From Rebecca billardiae RCC1528 (taxonomy: Eukaryota > Protista > Haptophyta), in contig OZ251225.1 of NCBI GenBank assembly GCA_965240325.2, positions 62,001 to 126,000 on the forward strand: a DNA stretch of 64,000 bases. The letters are read 5' to 3'. The notes beneath the pieces were generated by a model. The model was not told where the DNA came from, did no database searches, and saw only the letters and a program-made list of their open reading frames with translations. How positions within the stretch are numbered: position 1 is the stretch's first letter; each line of letters opens with the position of its first letter. Below are positions 26 through 48,241 of this stretch, piece by piece. A program made the position numbers and the translations under genes.

Positions 26-452
<427 letters not shown>

Positions 453-538
453 TGGCTCAGGCAAGCGCAGCACTCACAGGCCTGACGACAAGGTTGTCAA
501 CCACAACGGAGGCTGCAGGGGCGGATGGCGGGTTTCGC

Positions 539-982
539 AACGAGCACAAGCAAAGAACGCAGAGGAGATGGCGGGACCTCGGGCTTTGCAGATGCGCAGG
601 CCGAAGCAGGGGCTGCCGAGAGATGAGCAGCTCGGCCCGAAAGGTCGTGTAACCGATGATCGAGCGAGCTCTGCTAGGTGGGCTGCTTGATATGAACTTT
701 GGTAAGTTGCCACGCCGACTTAAGATGACCTTGTATATGATCTCGAGCGCCGGATAGTGGAGAGGAGCGGGTACTTACAGAGGAGCCAGTGTGGTTGGCC
801 GATATGAAAGGACCAGCGCCCGCCATGATGATGATAAAGGATAGCTCCGTGGCCGATGAGCTCCGGAAATCGACTGCAACTACCTGCAGGACCTAGAAGA
901 CGATGGCGGCCCTTGTCCACCAGCTGTGCGTTGCCTTTCCAGCCTCCCGACACACTCGGTTATAACTCCGTTATAACGCCAC
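539..982 (+). repeat. Element 1 repeat B1 (444 bp)
   Basis: Matches 8310-8753; one substitution seen. Ends GTTATAACTCCGTTATAACGCCAC. Confidence 0.95.
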
Positions 983-1247
983 GTGTCCTCCTGCATGAAG
1001 AGCGACGCGACGCCATTGAGTATGGACGAACATCACCCACAGTCTGCGTGATGTGCATGCGAGGGCAGGTATTGCAGCATATATGCGAGCATGCAGCAAA
1101 TGCCGATACACACCATGCCGAAATGGTGATGTATAAATATATACTTGCGCGTGGTGGGGATTTGTCCCTGGCTGAACGGGAAGAGCGACTGAGCCGACGG
1201 TGCCAAAGCTGCGCGCAGACTGCGCCAGCGTGTGGCAGCAAGGTCCC
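983..1247 (+). repeat. Element 1 repeat A2
   Basis: Direct copy of 188-452, abutting B1 at GCCAC|GTGTC. Confidence 0.95.
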
Positions 1248-1444
1248 GTTTGTGAGCAGGAGAGATCCCGTTGAGGATGAGGGCGCTGCTGAGAGATGAT
1301 GGAGGCGGATGACACGGAGCAGGCCAGAGGTCTGTAGCGCAAGGTGGCACGTCCTCGTTTTTTTTGGGGTTTTTTTTTTTGAGGTTGCGTGCGTGCGCGC
1401 GCGTTGGGTAAGCGAGTTCGGGGGTGGGTGCGTGGGGACCTCCG

Positions 1445-1763
1445 GACCTACAAAGGTCTGGCCCGCAAGGGCTGTGCCTACAAAGGCTGTGCCTACAAAG
1501 GTCACTGGTGTGCCTACAAAGGTCACGGATGTGCCTACAAAGGCTGTGCCTACAAAGGTCACTGGTGTGCCTACAAAGGTCACTGGTGTGGCCTACAAAG
1601 GTCACGGGTGTGCCTACAAAGGCTGTGCCTACAAAGGTCACTGGTGTGCCTACAAAGGCTGTGCCTACAAAGGTCACTGGTGTGCCTACAAAGGCTGTGC
1701 CTACAAAGGTCACTGGTATGCCTGCAAAGGCTGTGCCCACAAAGGCTGGTGGCCTACAAAGGC
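1445..1763. repeat. Minisatellite of mixed 15-bp (TGTGCCTACAAAGGC) and 21-bp (TGTGCCTACAAAGGTCACTGG) units
   Basis: About 18 copies of the core CCTACAAAGG in the 3' internal region of element 1. Confidence 0.95.
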
Positions 1764-1978: not shown

Positions 1979-4900
1979 TCAGCGACAAGCGCCCACCGCG
2001 GGCGGCGCGCCACGGACTCGCGAGCGCCGCCACACCGGCCCAGGGTTGCTGGCCTCGCCCACGCGCTCACCGCGCAGCGGCATGGGCGGATCGGCAGCGA
2101 GGACGAGCGGACGCGAGAGCAGCGCGACGAGCTCGTCAAGCAGCGCCTGCACGCGCACGACGGGCACTGCGAGCCACGTCGGGCGTAGGCCGAGCTGGGC
2201 GCACAGGCGCTCGAGGACGCCAAACTCGCCGCGGCTAGCTGCGTCCGCCAACGGGTTCATCTCCGAGAGGAGGAACTCCGAGTCGGCCAGCTCTGCGATC
2301 GCCCGCCATTCAGGGGCGTCGAGCAGCGCGAGGTGCGCGTGCTGCAGCAGCGGGGAGTGCGCGGACAGGTTGTGGAGGATGTGGTCGGTGACAGAGCTGT
2401 CGGTGCGGAGCCGGATGACGGCGCCTGCAATGCGCGGCGCGAAGATCAGCACGTTGGCGAACAGCGCGACGAACTCGAGCGCGACCACCGGCAGAGCGAG
2501 GTCCGACGCGCGCAAGGGCAGGCTCCAGCAGAGCCCGTGGGCGTAGCCCCCCAGCGACGGCACGCGCGCGCCATCCTTGGCGGCGTCCGAGAAGAGCACG
2601 AACGCAGGCGGCGCCGCGGCCGGCAGGTGCCGGCGGGTCGAGGGGCCCGGCAGCGCGTTGGAGAAGAGCACGCCCGCGGTGGAGCGCAGGAGCTTGGCCC
2701 AGCGCGCGCACGCGGCGCGGAGCGTGGCGGTGATGGGCACCGGCCGCGCTGGGTGGCGTCAGAGCTCGCCGAAGTGCGTGTACAGGCCGTAGAAGAACGT
2801 GCGGTTCGCCGGCGTGAGCGGGCGGAAGTGCTCGAGCAGACCGACGAGCGCGCGAAAGGTAGAGAAGGGTACCGGCCTGCTCGCCAGCAAGTCGTCCAGG
2901 ATGACGAGAGCGCGCAGGATCTTGGCCGGCGGCACCGCGAGGACGCCAGCGCAGACGACAAAGTCGCAGCCGAGCCAGAGCGCTGACTGGCCGATTTGGC
3001 GCTTCTCGGGGATGGCCATGAGCAGGCCGAGGCTGGTGGTGACGCGGTGCCAGACGGAGAGAAAGCGCACCGTTCTGTCCACGCCGACGATGGAGAAGTT
3101 GGTGTCGTCCGTGAAGCAGTCGCCGCTGAAGAGGCGCAGCTGGGGGCGCCGCGTGGTCACCGCGCTGCTCGATCCAGCTGCGCACAGCAGGGGGCGTCAG
3201 CGGGTCAGCGAGCATCGCCTCGAAGCGCGGCAGCTCCTCGTCGTCGAAGCACCGCGAGGCGATCTGCACGACGGTCGTGCTTAGGCGCTGCGCGATGTTA
3301 CTGCTGGGCGAGAGCCCAAAGCCGAGGCGCGACTCAGAGACGACGACGTGGCCGCCGGCGGCAACGCCCTCGCCGTCCGGCCGCAGCCAGAGGAGGCAGA
3401 CGTTTGGCAGCTCGGCCGTTGCGACGCCGAGGTGGTTGAAGAAGTCGGCCACGTCGTCTGCGAGCGTGAGTATTGGCTCGCCAAACACGGCGGCGGCGTC
3501 GAGCAGGATCGCGTTGTCGTGCATCTTGCCGCCGACCGTGGGCTTGGCTTCGCGCGGCCACTTGCGCGGCGGCGCGCGCGGCAGGGTGGGCGTAAGACCC
3601 GCTGCGATCATCCGCTCGGCCGCGGCGGACGGGGCAGCCGCTGCTGGGCGGGGCACGTCGTGCCAGCCCGCGGCCGCGTCAGCGACCTCGTCGTGGAGAC
3701 CGACAGCGACGTTGAGCGGGATGACAGGCACGCCAGCTGTGTCGACGAGCGCGCGGCGGGGCGCGCCGCCATCGGTCGTGCGGCGGTGCCGGTCCGGCTC
3801 GAGCTTGCGCGGCGTGGACCCCTGCGGGCTGAGCCGGCACGGGAGGAACGGGAAGTCGTCCCAGAAGCTGTACCAGCCGCGCGCCGCGAGGCGGAGGAGC
3901 TCCTTGTGCACGGAGGAGGCGGCCGCGCCGAGGGTGGTGAGGTGCGGCAGCAGCACGAGCTGGAGAGCCACATCGGCCTTGAACCGCACACCGTGGCGCA
4001 CAAAGGAGAGCAGCTCGCGGTCGGGGAAGTCGGGACCGACGGCAGCTTCGAGGGCGTCCGGCATGAGCGTGCGCGACTCGAGCGGCGCCGAGAAGTCGAG
4101 CGGCAAGTACACGCCGTCCACCTTGCTCCGAAGGTCCCAGACGATGCCGCGGGCCTCCGGGTGGAAGAGGTCCTGGCCGATGGCGAGCGGCGCGTTGGTG
4201 CGCCGGGCGGCTGAGCCGAGCGAGAGGTACGCGCGCAGGTCGGCCTCCTCGCGGCGGCGCCAGCCCGCGACGAGCTCGAGCGCCGCGGGTAAGAGGATGT
4301 CAGCAACCGACCGCGGGCGGTACGAAGTCGCACGCTGCCGCCGCGGCGTCGGCACGTTGGTGTGAGGAGGGTCAAAGCGCGCCGACGTGGAGTCAAAGGG
4401 GAGCGCGGCGAGCGACCCGAGCGGCACGCGCATCGAGTGACCCTGCAGGGCGACAGGGATGCTGGAGCGGTCGGTGCGCACGCGATCGCCCCAGCCGGTG
4501 AGCGACTGGCCTTCCGTGGCCGGCAAGGAGGCGGCGCGTACAGCGATCATCGCCCGCAGAGCGGCGTCGGTCGCCTCTGCCGCGCGCGCCCCTTGCGCCC
4601 ACGAGCGCTGCCTGGCGGCCGCCAGCGCCAGATCGCGCGCGGCCGAGGAACCGGCCGGACCCGTCGCGGCGAGAGGAGGCATGCGACGAGGGAGGACGTC
4701 CACGAGCGCTGCACACGCAGCGGCGGCCGGCTCGTACAAGTCGGAGCCGGCGAACGCGCCCAAAGGGAACCACTCGCAGCCAGCAGCGAGCATCGGCGAG
4801 CGCGGCGGGCGCGTTCGGCTGGGAAGGGCCACGACGTGCGCCTCGCCGCCAAAGCGGCACTCGGCGCCGCGCAGGCGTGTGGCGTAGATGCCCGTCAGCG

Positions 4901-5744
4901 GCGGGCCACCCGTGAGCGCGCGTGCGACGAGAGACTCGGCCCGTGGGCACGCCTCTGAGCGGGGGCACGACGACGTGGATGAGCCCAGAAAGGAAGTCGG
5001 CGCGCCGCCGGGCGCGCGTCGACCGGCGAGGATGAGCGGCGCGTCGGGATCGTCGAGAGCGACGACGAGCGCCAGCAGCGAGGTGCTGGAGTCCGTGGAT
5101 GCACTGAGCGTGCGTGTCGGCTCGACCCACGCCAGCCGCGATGGCGGCATGCCACCTCCGCTGCGCGCCGCAGGCGCGCGCAGCGGCGGCGGCGCACCTG
5201 CGCCGGCAGATGTCGCCGCCTGGCGAGCCCGCGCGTCGCCGCCGACGCGAGGCGGCGGCAGCCGCGAGCGGTCGAGCAGCGCTGAGGCAGCCACGCCCGG
5301 CGCCAGCGAAGCGAGAGGCGTGGAGCCGCCCCGCCCCGCCGGCGCGAGCGGCGGCGGCGGCGCATCGCAGCCGACAGCCGGCGCGGTTGGGCGCGCGCGC
5401 TTGGCGCCGTCGACGCGGGGCGGCTGCAGCCGCGCGCGGGCAAGCAGCACGGCAGCACCCACGCCCGCCGTCACCGCCGCGACTGGCGAGGAGGCGGCAG
5501 ATGACGAGTCGCCTGCGCGCGCAGCCTCAGCACGCAGCGACCGCGGCGAGGCAGCGGCGGCCAGCCCACCCGGCAAGGGAGCAGCAGGTGGTACCGCCGG
5601 CAGGGGCACCTCGGCGCTCATCGCCGCGCGCGCGGCAGCGCCCGCGGGCCCGGCGGCGACCGCCGCCGCGGACGCCGGCGAGAGAAGCGGGCAGCAATCC
5701 GCCGGCGGGCGCCCACTTAGTGGCCCGTCGGCAAGCCAAAACCC
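1979..5744 (-). pseudogene. Pol: reverse transcriptase plus RNase H of DIRS/Ngaro type, disrupted
   Basis: RT motifs PQGSTPRK..HRRTTD, ADDVADFFNHL, RLGFGLSPSSNIAQR, FTDD, EKRQIG..LWLG. RNase H motifs FSDAA, LEFVAL, RTDS, NPLADAASR. There is a frameshift near 3160 and an in-frame TGA at 2759-2761. Confidence 0.88.
5701..5744 (-). promoter_or_regulatory. Putative -1 programmed ribosomal frameshift signal
   Basis: G_GGT_TTT (5744-5738) is in the ORF1 frame and Pol is in the -1 frame. A 5-nt spacer precedes a stem GCCGACGGGC/GCCCGCCGGC enclosing CAC-TAA-GTG. Confidence 0.7.
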
Positions 5745-8203
5745 GAGGGCCAAGCGTCGAGAGCATGCTGGGCGAGGTCGACGGCATCGAGCGAGTGCGC
5801 GCCGGCGCCGATCGCGCCGTGGCCGGGTTGGCCCGAACACGGGCAGCGCCGGATGGCCACGTCCGCGAGTGAGGGCTTGGCCCTGCCGTCGGCGCGCAGC
5901 TTCGGGAACCGCGTGGCCACGACCGGCAGGCACGGGTCGACGTGCATCACACTCACGTACGCCGCCGAGAAGGAGCTCAGGCGGAAGAGGCCCAAGTTGT
6001 CCGAGAGCAGCCCGATGCCGAAGCAGTCGTGCGTCTCGGAGACGACATAGCCGACGGGGGGGCCGAAAGGCTTGGTGTTGAGGATGGTCACCTGCACGTC
6101 CGAGCCGTAGCTCGGCGCAGCGGCCGCAGGCCCGCGCGCCAACTGGCGCTGCTTCTTGCTCGGCGGGGGTTGCAGCTGCGCGCGAGCACGCCCTGGAGCG
6201 GTGGGCGACGGCTGCGGTTGCCCGCGCAAGGGGTTGGCCGGGGTGCTCGGGCCGGGGCCTGCCGACTGGCCGGCGCCCTGGCTGGCGCGGAGAGCGAGCA
6301 TCCGGTCGACAAACGCCGCGCTCTGGTTCCAGGTGATCATGGTCGCCTGCGTGGAGCGACAGGCCTCGCGGATGGTGGCCAGCACGACCGACGACGGGTC
6401 GAGGAACGGCAGCTCAGGAATGCGCGCGAGCGGGTTGGGGTCGGCGAGGGCGACGCCAAAGCGCGTCTCGAGGTCAGCGAGCATCTCATTGACCAGAGCG
6501 ACAGCAGCCGTCACCGCCAGGCCGATGCTGACGGCGGCCTGCAGTTCGACGAGCTTGCCAAAGAAGGAGTCGACCTCGGAGACGCCGACGTAGCCGAACA
6601 GCTTGATCGCCGCATCCTCCACGAGATGGAACATCCGGAGGTCTGTCAGCGTGTCCGAGAGCAGCGCCTCGAGCGACACGAACGGCGTCAGCGCGCAGTA
6701 AACGGAGTGCTGCGAGAGGGCGGCGGTGAGCGCGCGCGAGAGCTCGACGATGCCCAGCGCCGTGAACTTGCCCGCCACGAGCGAGGAGCAGAGCTTGGAT
6801 TCGAGCGTGAATGTCATCGACGCCTGCAGCTCGGGGACGTCCTCCCTGAGTCGCGCGGACAAGGCGCGCGCCAGAGGGCGGCCCCGCGCGGCCATCGAGA
6901 GCGTGATGAGCTGGAGGTTGCCGAGCTGCGAGGACGGGCTGGAGCCGGCGAGGACGCGGCGGATGAGGGTGAACCTCGACTGCAGCAGGAGGATCTCGCG
7001 CTGCCCAGCCGGGCTGGAGGCCGCCTTGAGGTCGAGCTCGCGCCACTCCGGGTTGTCCAGGAGAAGCGAGGCCGAGCCGGCAGCAGAGGAGCCGCGGTTG
7101 CCGCCGAGGCCCGAGCTCTGCGCAGCGGAGCCGCCATCGCCAGAGCCGAGGCCGACGAGCCTGGCGCGGACAAGCTCGAACGTGGCGCTGCCGCCGTGGT
7201 CAGAGATGCTGTCGACGACGCGCGCGACGTGAGAGTTCAGGAGCGCAAAAAGCTCGAACGACCACAGCACCAGCCCAGAAGAGGGCTGGACGACGGCGGC
7301 GAGCTTGTTGACGCACGAGGCGATGAGGTCGGCCGCCGGGGGTTGCGACGCCGAGACCACCAAGGAGAGGCTCGGGAAGAACGCGATGTACTCGGCGGGC
7401 GCGGAGCGGAGCGCCGAGTGTAACTCCTGGGGGGACGCCAGCAAACGCATCGCCTTGGCGAGGAAGACCAGGAGGTCGTCGGTCGAGTTGGGCAGGCTGG
7501 AGAGCAGCGCGCGCATGGAAGCGACGACGCGCACGAACGCATCAACGCGCAGAGCCCAGCTCACCGAAGCCGGATACGACACGCCGGGAGCCGCCCCGGA
7601 GTCGAGGATCTGGAGGGCACCGGCCGTCATGTCAAAGGCAGAAGCGTCCGCGAAATCGCCCGTGACGTGGCGCGGGCCCATGGTGAGCAGCAGGATGCCG
7701 AGCGGCGAGAAGAAGTAGCCCTCCAACATGAGGCGCGTCACCTTGAGGGAAGCGAAGGCCTTGAGCTCGGGCGAGGGCGGGGCGCCGAGGTTGTGCACCG
7801 AGAGCTCGATCAGGTCGTCGTCACCCACCACCACCGCCCACGGTGAGGTGCGCGTGCGCTCGAGGAACACAGAGAGCGAGTTCCCAAAGCCGTGCGTATC
7901 CGTCGCGAGCAAATCCAGCGCGCGCAGGATGGCTTGGTCCGTGAGGCCGATGCGGGCGAGCGTGGCTTTGGCGAGCGAGGTGAGGGGGCGGCCGTCGAGA
8001 GGGTCGCCCGCACGCGCAGCGCAAAAGATGAGGCCTTCGACCTGGGACACAGGGACCGACTGCATGGTCGGGTCGCCCGGGACAGGGGCCGGATCGATCA
8101 CGCCCTCGTTTTCGGCCATGAAGAGGAGGTGGTGGTTGCCAAGGAAGGCGGGGGCCTGGATGAGGAGGTTCCGGTTGGCATCGACAGACATGACGAGCGA
8201 CAT
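5717..8203 (-). CDS. ORF1, Gag-like protein of element 1
   Basis: Intact ORF of about 830 aa from MSLVMSVD, first in the element. It has a Pro/Gln-rich linker and a C-terminal Cys/His cluster (DPC...RRCPCSGQPGH...AH). Confidence 0.7.
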   Translation of the reverse strand: MSLVMSVDANRNLLIQAPAFLGNHHLLFMAENEGVIDPAPVPGDPTMQSVPVSQVEGLIFCAARAGDPLDGRPLTSLAKATLARIGLTDQAILRALDLLATDTHGFGNSLSVFLERTRTSPWAVVVGDDDLIELSVHNLGAPPSPELKAFASLKVTRLMLEGYFFSPLGILLLTMGPRHVTGDFADASAFDMTAGALQILDSGAAPGVSYPASVSWALRVDAFVRVVASMRALLSSLPNSTDDLLVFLAKAMRLLASPQELHSALRSAPAEYIAFFPSLSLVVSASQPPAADLIASCVNKLAAVVQPSSGLVLWSFELFALLNSHVARVVDSISDHGGSATFELVRARLVGLGSGDGGSAAQSSGLGGNRGSSAAGSASLLLDNPEWRELDLKAASSPAGQREILLLQSRFTLIRRVLAGSSPSSQLGNLQLITLSMAARGRPLARALSARLREDVPELQASMTFTLESKLCSSLVAGKFTALGIVELSRALTAALSQHSVYCALTPFVSLEALLSDTLTDLRMFHLVEDAAIKLFGYVGVSEVDSFFGKLVELQAAVSIGLAVTAAVALVNEMLADLETRFGVALADPNPLARIPELPFLDPSSVVLATIREACRSTQATMITWNQSAAFVDRMLALRASQGAGQSAGPGPSTPANPLRGQPQPSPTAPGRARAQLQPPPSKKQRQLARGPAAAAPSYGSDVQVTILNTKPFGPPVGYVVSETHDCFGIGLLSDNLGLFRLSSFSAAYVSVMHVDPCLPVVATRFPKLRADGRAKPSLADVAIRRCPCSGQPGHGAIGAGAHSLDAVDLAQHALDAWPSGFGLPTGH

Positions 8204-8244
8204 GGCGAGGACGGGGCGGAGCGAGAGCGAGAGCGAGAGGGTGC

Positions 8245-8309
8245 AACGAGCACAAGCAAAGAACGCAGAGGAGATGGCGGGACCTCTGGCTTTGCAGATG
8301 CGCAGGCCA
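8245..8309 (+). repeat. 65-bp tandem duplication of the start of repeat B
   Basis: AACGAGCACAAGCAAAGAACG...GCAGGCC is repeated immediately before B2. Confidence 0.9.
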
Positions 8310-10633
<2,324 letters not shown>

Positions 10634-12120
10634 CATCGATCGTCATCGTTACAGCCCGTCAGGCGGCAGCTCAGTCAGCCGCGCCACCGGGTATACGTAT
10701 ACGCGCCGCCAGCGGTATATAACTTTATTATTATACATCATATATATATATGTCTGCATCTGCAGCAGCCCGCCGGCGGGCCGGGCTGCGACATCGACTA
10801 CCACCTCATCTGCTTCATCGCCCAGAGCGCGCTAGGCGGCGCGCTCACTCCCCAAGCCCCTCTTCTGCAGCTGGCCTGTTTTATTTCTACCAGATTCCAT
10901 TTACTATGTCAGTCTATGTCACGGCGACAAACCCGTGCCCGCCAGTGGGAATCGGTGTCACGCCCCGTTCAGTGTACCTCTCACGGCCGATGGCGGCCCC
11001 GGCGTGCGCGAGGAATGCGATTCCTGCACTCCTCGGTGACCGGTGAGTGCAGGAATCCAGTTGCGGCGCTCGTCCGCCTCGTCGTCGTCGCACACGAGGT
11101 ACACTGAAGAGCACGGGTCAGAAGCCAGATCTCTCTGCGCGCTCGCGCCCGCGCGGCGAGGCACTGGCAGGCTTGTTCTGGCATCATCTTGGCCAAGACT
11201 GCAGCCTGCCAGATGCGCGAGGACGCGTGTGCACGCCTTTCCCGCGTCATGGGTGCGCGTGGCACGCACCCTGTCGTCATCTACGCCGAGGAGGCCTGAG
11301 CAACCAGCCCACCAACCTGCCGTGACCACGTTCAAATGCAGGCGGCAAGCTGCATGCGAGCGCACGCAACGGAAGCATCTCACGCTCGACAAGGAAGTGG
11401 CGGCGGAGCGAGTGTAGCTGGTATCGTTTGCAGCCCATCGGTTGTTCAACAATCCTGGTTCAACAACTGACACGGGCGCGACGCAGCCAAGGCAGAGTGC
11501 TTGCAGCTCGCACTTCGCAGCGCGCCCGCAACTGCGGTTTGCCGCCGCGGCGCCGCGGCGATCGTCACACCGCCGTGCGCTGCGAGTGACCTCTGTGTCA
11601 TGGCGAAGCACCATGGCAAGGCTAAGCAGCATGCCTTGGCAACACCTTTCGCTACAGCTCAGCGCCCTAGTACGAACATGCGCCAACGACGTGCCATCCC
11701 TACTCCGCAATCCGCCAATCGCGCCGGCACCCACCACCAGCGGGCAAGCCGCCATTTTACCCGGTTTTGGCGAATGTCGCCGTTGGGCTCTCGTAGAAAT
11801 AAAACAGGCCAGCTGCGCGCCGCTTGGCCGGCGCGCGGCGACGCGTACTACGACCTCATCCTCATCCAGGCGCCCACGCGGGCGCACGGGGGCGACAGCC
11901 GCGGCTGCCGCTTGCCGGAGCTGCTCGCCGCTAGGTCGGCGGGCGGCGACATCGACTACGACCTCACGACGGTCCTCATCCAAGTGCTCCGGAAGGCGCT
12001 CGGCCGCGGCGGCATCTGCCGTCGCCGCCGCGTGCCCCAGGCCGAGGCGGTGCTCCATCCCGGCCCCGCTCCCGTAGGGGGGCAGGGCTGCGGGTGGCGC
12101 ACTGTCTGACCTGGACGGAA

Positions 12121-47099: not shown

Positions 47100-47723
47100 G
47101 GCGCGACGCACCCGCCGTGAGCCGCCGCGATGGTTCGCTCGCGTGCCGTCCGCCGTCGCAGCGGCGTGGGCGGTGTGAGCGCGCGGTGCTCGACGGCCGA
47201 CGTCCGGAACGGTCCGCGCCATTCGTCACCCTCGATTGCTACAGTCGGCGCATATCAGTCGTCGTTGCGTGTAGTAGCGCATTATGCATCATCAGCATCA
47301 GAAATGTAATAACTACATCATCACGCTATATATTATGCGCGCAGCATGTTCCGACGTGATGATGCTGCGCTGCCGATATCGCCGTGAATCGTGATGGCGG
47401 ATGCTGCGTGCTACCGGCCTACCGTCACCGTGCCTGCCGCTGTCGTCGGGCGCCGGAGTCCCGGGGTGGGCCTGTGCATGCATCAGTCGTAGTGATTACG
47501 TACCGCGGGACCTACGTGGTGAGTGTGCCGCGGTGGGCGGCGGCTCGCGGCCTCGCCGGCTCACGGGCACGGCGCGCTGTGCTGGCGCGGCTCGGTTCGA
47601 TAGCCCGACTGCGAGCAGGGCGAGGCCGCGCATATGCGCATGCATGCGCTCATACCCGCGCCTGATGCACTGTGGCTGTGCACGACAGCACAGACACACA
47701 CACACACACATATATATATATAT

Positions 47724-48241
47724 GTGTCCTCCTGCACAAAGATTGAAGCGGCGCCAATCGATGTGTATATATACTTGTGTGAGGTGGGGATTTGTCCCTG
47801 GATGACGGGAAGAGCGACTGAGCCGACGGTGCCAAAGCTGCGCGCAGACTGCGCCAGCGTGTGGCAGCAAGGTGAGCGACGAGCGAGCGAGCACGAGCAA
47901 AGAAGCACGCGACGGCGAAGGAGATGGGGCCTTGTTTGCTGATGATGAGGCAAGGGGCCGACTGGCAGTAACTGATGAGCAGCTTGTGAGCTCGGCGCGA
48001 AAGGTCGTAAAGTGCCGATTTGTGTGAGCTCGACTGGTTAGTTGCTTGATGAACTGGAAAGCTGCCACTCGGATGACTGCAGATGATCTTGGATATGATC
48101 TCGAGCGCCGTACCAGCACGAAGCAACTACCTGCAGGATCAGGTAGACGATGGAGGCCCTTGGCCTTGGCTGTCACGACACTGCGACGCATCACCTTCCA
48201 GCCTCCCGACACATTCGGTTATAACTGCGTTATAACGCCAC
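47724..48241 (-). mobile_element. Solo A+B remnant related to the element 1 family (element 3)
   Basis: Starts GTGTCCTCCTGCA, shares GAAGAGCGACTGAGCCGACGGTGCC...GGCAGCAAGGT with repeat A, and ends GTTATAACTGCGTTATAACGCCAC. Flanked by TA repeats. Confidence 0.85.

Follow-up and report, generated by a model that had tools for sequence, protein, structure and literature searches.

A covarying two-tier hairpin at the repeat junction of Ngaro-like retrotransposons in a haptophyte: a candidate folded recombinase site

Introduction

Recombination at folded single-stranded DNA is known from bacterial integrons, where it acts on attC, and a folded site is also known from the cholera phage CTX-phi. The attC site, which is recombined by IntI, is an imperfect two-tier palindrome made of an outer stem (R box), an unpaired central spacer, an inner stem (L box) and a terminal loop. 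What is conserved in attC is its structure and not its sequence, and one recombinase acts on very diverse sites. A tyrosine recombinase (YR) bound to the 5' outer arm would cut 3' of that arm, and this is where attC bottom strands are cut. The attP(+) site of CTX-phi, used by XerCD, is a forked hairpin composed of two dif-like sites in inverse orientation, separated by about 90 nt. Only the mobile form has this folded single-strand site; integration abolishes it, and insertion is thereby directional. The loxP and FRT sites also contain inverted repeats recognised by a YR, with core sites in which arms of 11-13 bp flank a 6-8-bp crossover region that contains both cut sites.

Among retrotransposons that encode a YR, DIRS-1 is the sole experimental system, and it points to single-stranded cDNA. 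To our knowledge, the mode of integration of DIRS, Ngaro and PAT elements has been an open question since 1985 and the site of their recombinase has never been defined. DIRS-1 intermediates are linear, antisense, single-stranded cDNA, and an internal complementary region is required once the first strand has been made; a possible hairpin near the 3' end has been proposed as primer (PMC7192593). DIRS-1 has a 3-bp circular junction at which integration is thought to occur with no target duplication, and DIRS-like elements in the literature are described with split direct repeats and a 3-bp circular junction (PMC7192593, PMC3266345). Ngaro, PAT-like, TOC and kangaroo elements are arranged as A1-ORFs-B1-A2-B2 and encode gag-like, RT/RNase H and YR functions in this order; a Dam-like methyltransferase domain marks the PAT-like and DIRS1-like groups and is missing from Ngaro. 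We found no description of a junction-spanning covarying hairpin in Ngaro, PAT or TOC elements in the literature searched; most subscription papers, among them the reviews by Poulter and Goodwin, were outside it, and an earlier description is possible.

Here, we analysed 64,000 nt of the genome of Rebecca billardiae (the window), in which a preliminary description had noted a folded, att-like motif at the repeat junction of retroelements.

Results and discussion

The junction hairpin

Read directly, the junction of element 1 (949-987) is GACAC-ACTCG-GTTATAAC-TCC-GTTATAAC-GCCAC-GTGTC and that of element 2 (9627-9665) is TAGAC-ACTCA-GTTATAGG-TTC-CCTATAAC-GCCAC-GTCTA. Both are 39-nt two-tier palindromes with a 5-bp outer stem, a 5x5 bubble, an 8-bp inner stem and a 3-nt loop. 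The preliminary description had quoted these sequences and given them an identical geometry, and its letters match exactly. Element 3 (47723-48241), a relative of element 1, starts with GTGTC and ends with GACAC-ATTCG-GTTATAAC-TGC-GTTATAAC-GCCAC. The core pattern GTTATA-N7-TATAACGCCAC was found five times in the window, compared with 0.00 expected. A genome-wide collection of its matches, which had been proposed as a check, gave 221 sites with at most one mismatch in the 72-Mb genome and 0 with the reversed control.

The layout is of the attC type in that a central spacer is unpaired between two paired boxes and a variable loop closes the structure. It differs from attC in being part of a eukaryotic retroelement and in having much shorter stems and a loop of 3 nt. 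It also has no predicted extrahelical bases, with perfect stems and a symmetric bubble in every family of this genome. An Rfam search at the junction gave no match. In DNA folding predictions with the 39-mers, the minimum-energy structure was the claimed hairpin on both strands. The predicted energies were -6.1 to -7.4 kcal/mol (z -2.1 to -4.0 compared with shuffles), a modest stability. Stems this weak (-6 to -9 kcal/mol) count against reading the junction as a folded site.

Element layout and target

Features of the window are listed in Table 1. Element 1 contains the split direct repeats A1-internal-B1-A2-B2, and the same layout is seen in L031-L033, L046 and L048, as in Ngaro, PAT-like, TOC and kangaroo elements. 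Repeat mapping showed that its A copies (188-452 and 983-1247) are 100% identical and that its B copies lie at 453-982 and 8224-8753 (539-838 corresponds to 8310-8609). The A copies place the repeat boundary at 982|983, and other copies, flanked by ...ATAT|GTG.. and GCCAC|ATAT.., fix it to within 1-2 nt. From this mapping, B ends with the outer-left arm, the bubble and the inner hairpin, and A contributes the outer-right arm as its first 5 nt. Thus, the outer stem spans the B|A boundary, as had been claimed. Because the hairpin straddles this boundary, the full structure occurs only at an internal or circle junction. In sense orientation the elements read As1-ORFs-Bs1-As2-Bs2, and pairing joins the final 5 nt of Bs to nt 30-34 of As, enclosing the 5x5 bubble and the 8-bp/3-nt hairpin.

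Table 1. Features of the window, with positions counted from its first nucleotide.
Feature	Position	Strand	Evidence
Complete two-tier hairpin, internal B1|A2 junction of element 1	949..987	+	sequence, fold, covariation
Element 1 repeat A1; starts GTGTCC; outer-right arm only	188..452	+	repeat mapping
Element 1 repeat B1; ends with outer-left arm, bubble, inner hairpin and GCCAC	453..982	+	repeat mapping
Element 1 repeat A2	983..1247	+	repeat mapping
Two TCCCGTT motifs at the A2/internal-region border (sense AAACGGGA, purine-rich)	1244..1273	+	motif scan
Element 1 putative RT-RNase H coding region, frameshifted	1979..5933	-	motifs read in ORFs
RT N-terminal motifs (ORF 2310-5933), CFTDD (ORF 2759-3160) and RNase H (ORF 1979-2740)	1979..5933	-	
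Gag-like ORF1 of element 1, 867 aa, no Pfam match	5717..8320	-	
Element 1 repeat B2; terminal site 8720-8753 without outer-right arm, abuts (TA)n	8224..8753	+	
Element 2, 1.66-kb non-coding split-repeat element, GG/CC family	8874..10532	+	
Complete two-tier hairpin, internal junction of element 2; both stems compensatory relative to element 1	9627..9665	+	
Element 2 terminal site, no outer-right arm, followed by ACAT(AT)n	10499..10532	+	
Element 3, solo A-B unit (loop TGC, bubble ATTCG); site 48208-48241 without outer-right arm	47723..48241	+	
(TA)n(TG)n flank at A end of element 1; target microsatellite	27..187	.	
(AT)n(GT)n tract between elements 1 and 2	8754..8873	.	

Like attP(+) of CTX-phi, the complete structure would belong to the mobile form and be lost on integration. 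CTX-phi differs in that its folded site lies in a phage genome and is used by host recombinases, whereas here a 39-nt site spans the element's own terminal-repeat junction and the element type encodes its own YR. DIRS-1 is also a YR retrotransposon in which internal sequence defines how the two ends meet (PMC7192593, PMC3266345), except that it does so with inverted terminal repeats and a region complementary to both ends, in place of the split direct repeats and the junction-straddling, self-complementary hairpin found here.

Insertions of all families are in (TA)n and are joined as ...ATAT|element|ATAT..., so that the partner is a microsatellite and not, as for attC, an attI site. Of 29 distinct terminal copies, 24 have GCCAC|ATAT at the B end; the A-end junction is ATAT|G(TG)n. 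The (TG)n at A ends has from 1 to about 35 repeats, while the internal junction has GTGT alone. Flanks of the (TA)n type occur in the window at 27-187, 8754-8873 and 10533-10631 and also across L001-L054.

Copies joined in other ways were also seen. At L017:1480-1540 (G000:C1:4896640-4896690), a GG-type junction is joined to unrelated sequence at ..GGCT|ACACTCA. The normal boundary, mirrored to the other side of the hairpin, would be at outer-left arm|bubble, and the breakpoint is no more than 2 nt from there; it may reflect a crossover of the other strand, or simply a deletion. Two GG-type elements at L020:1490-1560 (G000:C3:116677-116730) are head to head, their GCCAC ends separated by ATATAT alone. 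Tandem arrays of up to five GG-type units with a spacing of 872-874 bp are present at G000:C11:1464901-1468420, C19:1059254-1063080 and C12:579066-580835; such (A-X-B)n multimers are what recombination from junction to junction, or rolling-circle cDNA, would be expected to produce.

The motif TCCCGTT(T) is present at the A2/internal-region border in all four families of this genome, usually twice (window 1244-1273 and 9884-9936; L032:1359 and 1381; L046:1211 and 1233; L048:2121). It is a likely replication signal in cis, distinct from the hairpin, that resembles a polypurine tract and may be primer-site-like.

Coding content and recombinase

By layout and coding content, the elements classify as Ngaro-like split-direct-repeat YR retrotransposons. 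Membership among the YR retroelements had been proposed in the preliminary description and is borne out by a sister copy, L048, that is 95% identical to element 1 in RNase H. A single 1317-aa frame in L048 encodes a putative RT and RNase H, a 2A-like motif, a low-complexity linker and a YR that passes PF00589 (28.1 bits compared with a cutoff of 27.1). The catalytic R, K, H-x-x-R, H/W and Y are present in L048, and the motifs RKAE, HSxRIG and RWRS...IY are invariant across relatives. We found no methyltransferase (Dam-like) domain after RNase H; the 2A-like motif, linker and YR follow instead. This agrees with Ngaro and not with the PAT-like or DIRS1-like groups.

Element 1 is coded on the minus strand and contains only gag-like and putative RT and RNase H sequences; reading of the ORFs of elements 1 and 2 in the window revealed no YR. 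The coding strand was settled from sister copies and from RT motifs (..LADDVADFF.., CFTDD, PEKRQ..LG) and an RNase H pattern (D-E-D..N..AD..SR) that could be read in the frames. A Pfam scan of 14 element 1 ORFs from both strands gave no match, the RT/RNase H region had no Pfam or PDB sequence match, and a PDB sequence search with the YR profile returned nothing useful. In a language-model search, the nearest Atlas clusters of the RT-RNase H region carry RVT_1 and RT_RNaseH, at 0.95-0.97. The RT of the clade (L048:4514-6673, minus strand) is likewise invisible to Pfam RVT_1 and PDB sequence searches with its motifs readable, and the gag-like ORF matches no family.

An RT too divergent for Pfam RVT_1 sets these elements apart from described Ngaro, PAT-like, TOC and kangaroo elements, as do a 2A-like NPGP between RNase H and YR, a 21-25-bp tandem array after the YR, strictly (TA)n insertions and the covarying junction hairpin. 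The 2A-like peptide reads ..GEA[S/R]NPGP (window 2036-2077, minus strand, and the L048 ORF). In the window copy, the frame stops 18 codons after NPGP and the YR is missing. L047, which is 61% identical in RNase H and has no repeats and no junction site, ends its ORF with a 2A-like ..GEATHPGP. The tandem array, of 21-25-bp or about 100-bp units, is directly downstream of the YR or RNase H, and its position is conserved in distant relatives with a different sequence (window 1440-1760; L058:7955-8660; L061:7931-8470; L064:7339-7554; L068:8077-8950).

Protein and profile searches of the genome identified five YR copies that are at least 98% identical and form a single lineage. These copies sit in elements with AC-type and GC-type inner stems; the same searches found no YR copy in the GG family. 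Because only one YR lineage was found, one enzyme probably serves all families. The proposal in the preliminary description that one enzyme moves diverse families fits this single lineage, which would then mobilise the GG family as well.

Covariation among the families of this genome

In an ungapped alignment of the four families, 13 of 13 pairs are standard in every sequence, so that 100% of cells are paired. As a register control, sliding the 3' partner by 1-3 columns in this alignment reduced pairing to 21-55%. Four pairs are changed on both sides, with no one-sided change and none broken. The preliminary description had claimed compensatory changes in both stems and had held that other families with the same ends should keep the pairing; both hold in these four families. 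The outer stem is either GACAC/GTGTC or TAGAC/GTCTA. At positions 7-8 of the inner stem the variants are AC/GT, GG/CC (about 111 sites genome-wide) and GC/GC, all of which are complementary. When left-arm variants were scanned, the only non-complementary inner-stem form among the matches listed (100 of 111) was CC/GT, in one copy. No opposing bases of the bubble are able to pair; its right half, GCCAC, is invariant and its left half differs at two positions. Elements 1 and 2 had been called unalignable outside this site, and BLAST agreed: the hairpin arms aside, they share the last 11 nt of B only. Both the abundant GG family and the TGC family (4.6 kb) are non-coding.

Within the genome, the compensatory changes go back to only two to three independent events, and this covariation signal is suggestive and thin alone. 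The small number of events speaks for the alternative that the palindromes are simply inherited, by chance or hitchhiking, with no selected structure. Against this, no change is one-sided and families whose repeats do not align keep the hairpin. With the comparisons to distant relatives below, we consider an origin by chance very improbable.

Another explanation is that the site is a nested palindrome in ordinary duplex, bound without folding by symmetric multimers of the YR or of an accessory factor, with the halves changing together to match the same protein. Dimeric DNA-binding proteins typically recognise inverted half-sites, GTTATAAC is palindromic by itself, and the invariant parts of the site, GTTATA, TATAAC and GCCAC, resemble sequence-specific contacts. 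However, the same YR lineage is associated with AC and GC types and is the sole one available for GG, which argues that the variable positions are not read as bases, yet they remain complementary. The arrangement also misfits a duplex core of the lox/FRT type. The inner arms are 3 nt apart, the crossover is outside them, with the element boundary 5 nt 3' of the inner palindrome, and no inverted copy of the left arm was found to the right of the boundary at the junction. The outer arms, separated by 29 nt, are different from the inner ones. Complementary variable positions, a single YR, the spacing of the arms and the outside crossover fit intramolecular pairing instead. Since relatives keep the geometry with wholly different sequence (see below), we regard binding to an unfolded palindrome as improbable.

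Distant relatives

YR homologues of 24-44% identity were found in marine and lake metagenomes. A covariance model (R1) derived from this genome's four families was too sequence-bound for comparison across lineages. Its search did not recover the hairpins of L057, L079 and L082, and its matches at E 0.4-8 look like chance. MAFFT gave no alignment of hairpins from different lineages. We therefore compared lineages by scans for the geometry.

The YR of L057 is 31% identical to that of this genome. Its junction hairpin, ATTCC-GGTTT-GATAGTGC-GAA-GCACTATC-TTTCG-GGAAT, is a perfect 5-5-8-3-8-5-5 structure of unrelated sequence and lies upstream of gag, with repeated segments on either side. No pair is broken, and 8 of the 13 have both bases changed when compared with element 1. 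Shuffles gave 0.04 matches per contig even when one mismatch per stem was allowed. L079, with a YR 72% identical to that of L057, has identical hairpin stems at a site 726 nt after the pol stop, the same placement as the junction in this genome. About 4 of 13 loop or bubble bases differ between L079 and L057, compared with 0 of 26 stem bases, in an aligned region that is about 12% diverged. In L082 (YR 43% identical to that of L057), the hairpin is GGGTTCC-TTAT-[11 bp]-GCA-[11 bp]-GTG-GGAACCC, with tiers of 7 and 11 bp. A 68-nt repeat of L082 (73-140 = 11760-11827) ends 2 nt after the outer-left arm; judged by this repeat, the hairpin straddles the boundary as it does in this genome.

Scanning the geometry in these relatives gave nine two-tier hairpins in 14.9 kb of non-coding sequence, compared with 1.2 in shuffles. 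There were also 30 in 93 kb of coding sequence, a background from GC-rich contigs that would favour chance. Such a background does not readily account for what is seen at junction positions, a perfect 13-bp structure of identical geometry in L057 and L079 and one of 18 bp in L082, or for the conservation of every stem base between L057 and L079. Taken with the four families of this genome, these relatives with unrelated sequence support the earlier claim that it is the pairing, rather than the sequence, that is conserved.

L058, L059 and L063 have a 6-7-5-8-5-7-6 hairpin (L058:8917-8960) inside a 76-nt interval that must contain the junction. Other relatives were weaker or less clear. L078, L081, L083 and L085 have candidate two-tier hairpins. 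L067 and L068 share the geometry of this genome apart from one mismatch in each stem, and their hairpin may lie 230 nt from where As starts; immediately upstream of As, L084 carries a three-tier palindrome that is irregular. The scan found no clean two-tier hairpin in L080, L072 or L056. Hairpins that are absent, irregular or displaced in these relatives (L080, L072, L056, L084 and L067/L068) are a point against a folded site.

We also considered whether the sense-strand loop is always a stable GNA triloop. GNA loops are found in this genome (GGA, GCA and GAA), in L057 (GAA) and in L082 (GCA); the ACA of L079 and the AAA of L067 weaken this idea.

Proposed mechanism

Selection on pairing at the junction is well supported by these sequence comparisons, and they suggest that the YR reads a folded shape and not a fixed sequence. 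We put the case as evenly balanced that the 39-nt motif is the junction (att-like) site of this clade and that the folded junction is the site of its recombinase, and this is the reading we prefer. In design the junction site is like attC and the CTX-phi attP, yet it is a member of neither system. Single-strand recombination is a feature of attC that the junction hairpin may share. Use as a folded att site is plausible since the sense-strand boundary matches the polarity of attC cleavage, at the 3' edge of the 5' outer arm.

In the mechanism we propose, the YR would bind the folded junction of a circular or end-juxtaposed cDNA, present either as a single-strand hairpin or as an extruded cruciform. 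It would break and join DNA at the edge between outer stem and bubble (sense GACAC|GTGGC, 3' of the 5' outer arm) and would recombine the folded junction with a (TA)n tract. Integration would then part the outer arms, and the full structure would survive at the internal junction alone. Because pairing and not base identity would be read at the variable positions, one YR could move several non-autonomous families.

The strand that would fold is signalled in conflicting ways. GNA loops and the cleavage polarity favour the sense strand; the polarity of DIRS-1 cDNA and a mismatch in L067 that is a G.T wobble only on the antisense strand favour the antisense strand. These antisense signals raise the alternative that the hairpin serves replication and not integration. 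It could act as a self-splint for circularisation of antisense cDNA, holding the 5' end (GTGTC...) against GACAC beside the 3' end (...GCCAC) in place of the internal complementary region of DIRS-1. It could also act in the priming, template switching or packaging of genomic RNA. DIRS-1 offers precedents in its antisense single-stranded cDNA, its internal complementary region and its proposed priming hairpin (PMC7192593). The elements studied here are without a complementary region of the DIRS-1 type. An antisense nick, GCCAC-3' / 5'-GTGTC, would be at the foot of the outer stem, the L067 wobble pairs on this strand, and covariation fits RNA and DNA equally. On the other hand, a 3' end in an unpaired 5-nt bubble is a poor substrate for ligation, and the separate, conserved pair of TCCCGTT motifs already marks a likely replication cis site. 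The sense-strand boundary has the canonical polarity of YR cleavage, and an element for packaging or priming need not match the point of DNA joining in two lineages, as the hairpin does in this genome and in L082. We consider a role in replication unlikely, though it is a serious candidate.

The broadest form of the preferred reading, a folded recombinase site, is that a eukaryotic retrotransposon clade, present in this alga and in marine protists, integrates through an attC-like folded single-strand or cruciform site that would form only where the two ends meet. The element's YR would recognise the shape of this site, cut it at the stem-bubble edge and exchange strands with (TA)n, and one enzyme would serve several families that are unrelated and non-autonomous. 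As far as we know, no case of structure-specific, single-strand-type YR recombination has been described for a eukaryotic mobile element before, and we regard the whole of this reading as possible, if somewhat doubtful. If the folded site is real, it would extend the integron and CTX-phi mechanism to eukaryotes and would account for the mobilisation, by one enzyme, of sequence-unrelated parasites that exploit the element. For binding and cleavage assays, the elements offer a concrete substrate: the hairpin is short, conserved and covarying and lies precisely where the two ends join, it has natural compensatory variants, and it comes with one cognate YR and a (TA)n target.

Other observations

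A second 5-5-8-3-8-5-5 hairpin is present inside the pol coding region of two relatives (L057:6472-6510 and L078:5876-5914). It has one T.G wobble and a compensatory change from G-C to A-T between L057 and L078; this genome yielded no counterpart. In the 5' leader of L065 and L058 there is a 173-nt segment, bounded by CAG|GTGAGT and ..CAG|, that is missing from L059 (L065:131-354 compared with L059:148-200). By these bounds, the segment looks like an intron that was lost in L059, a copy that would have been made from spliced RNA.
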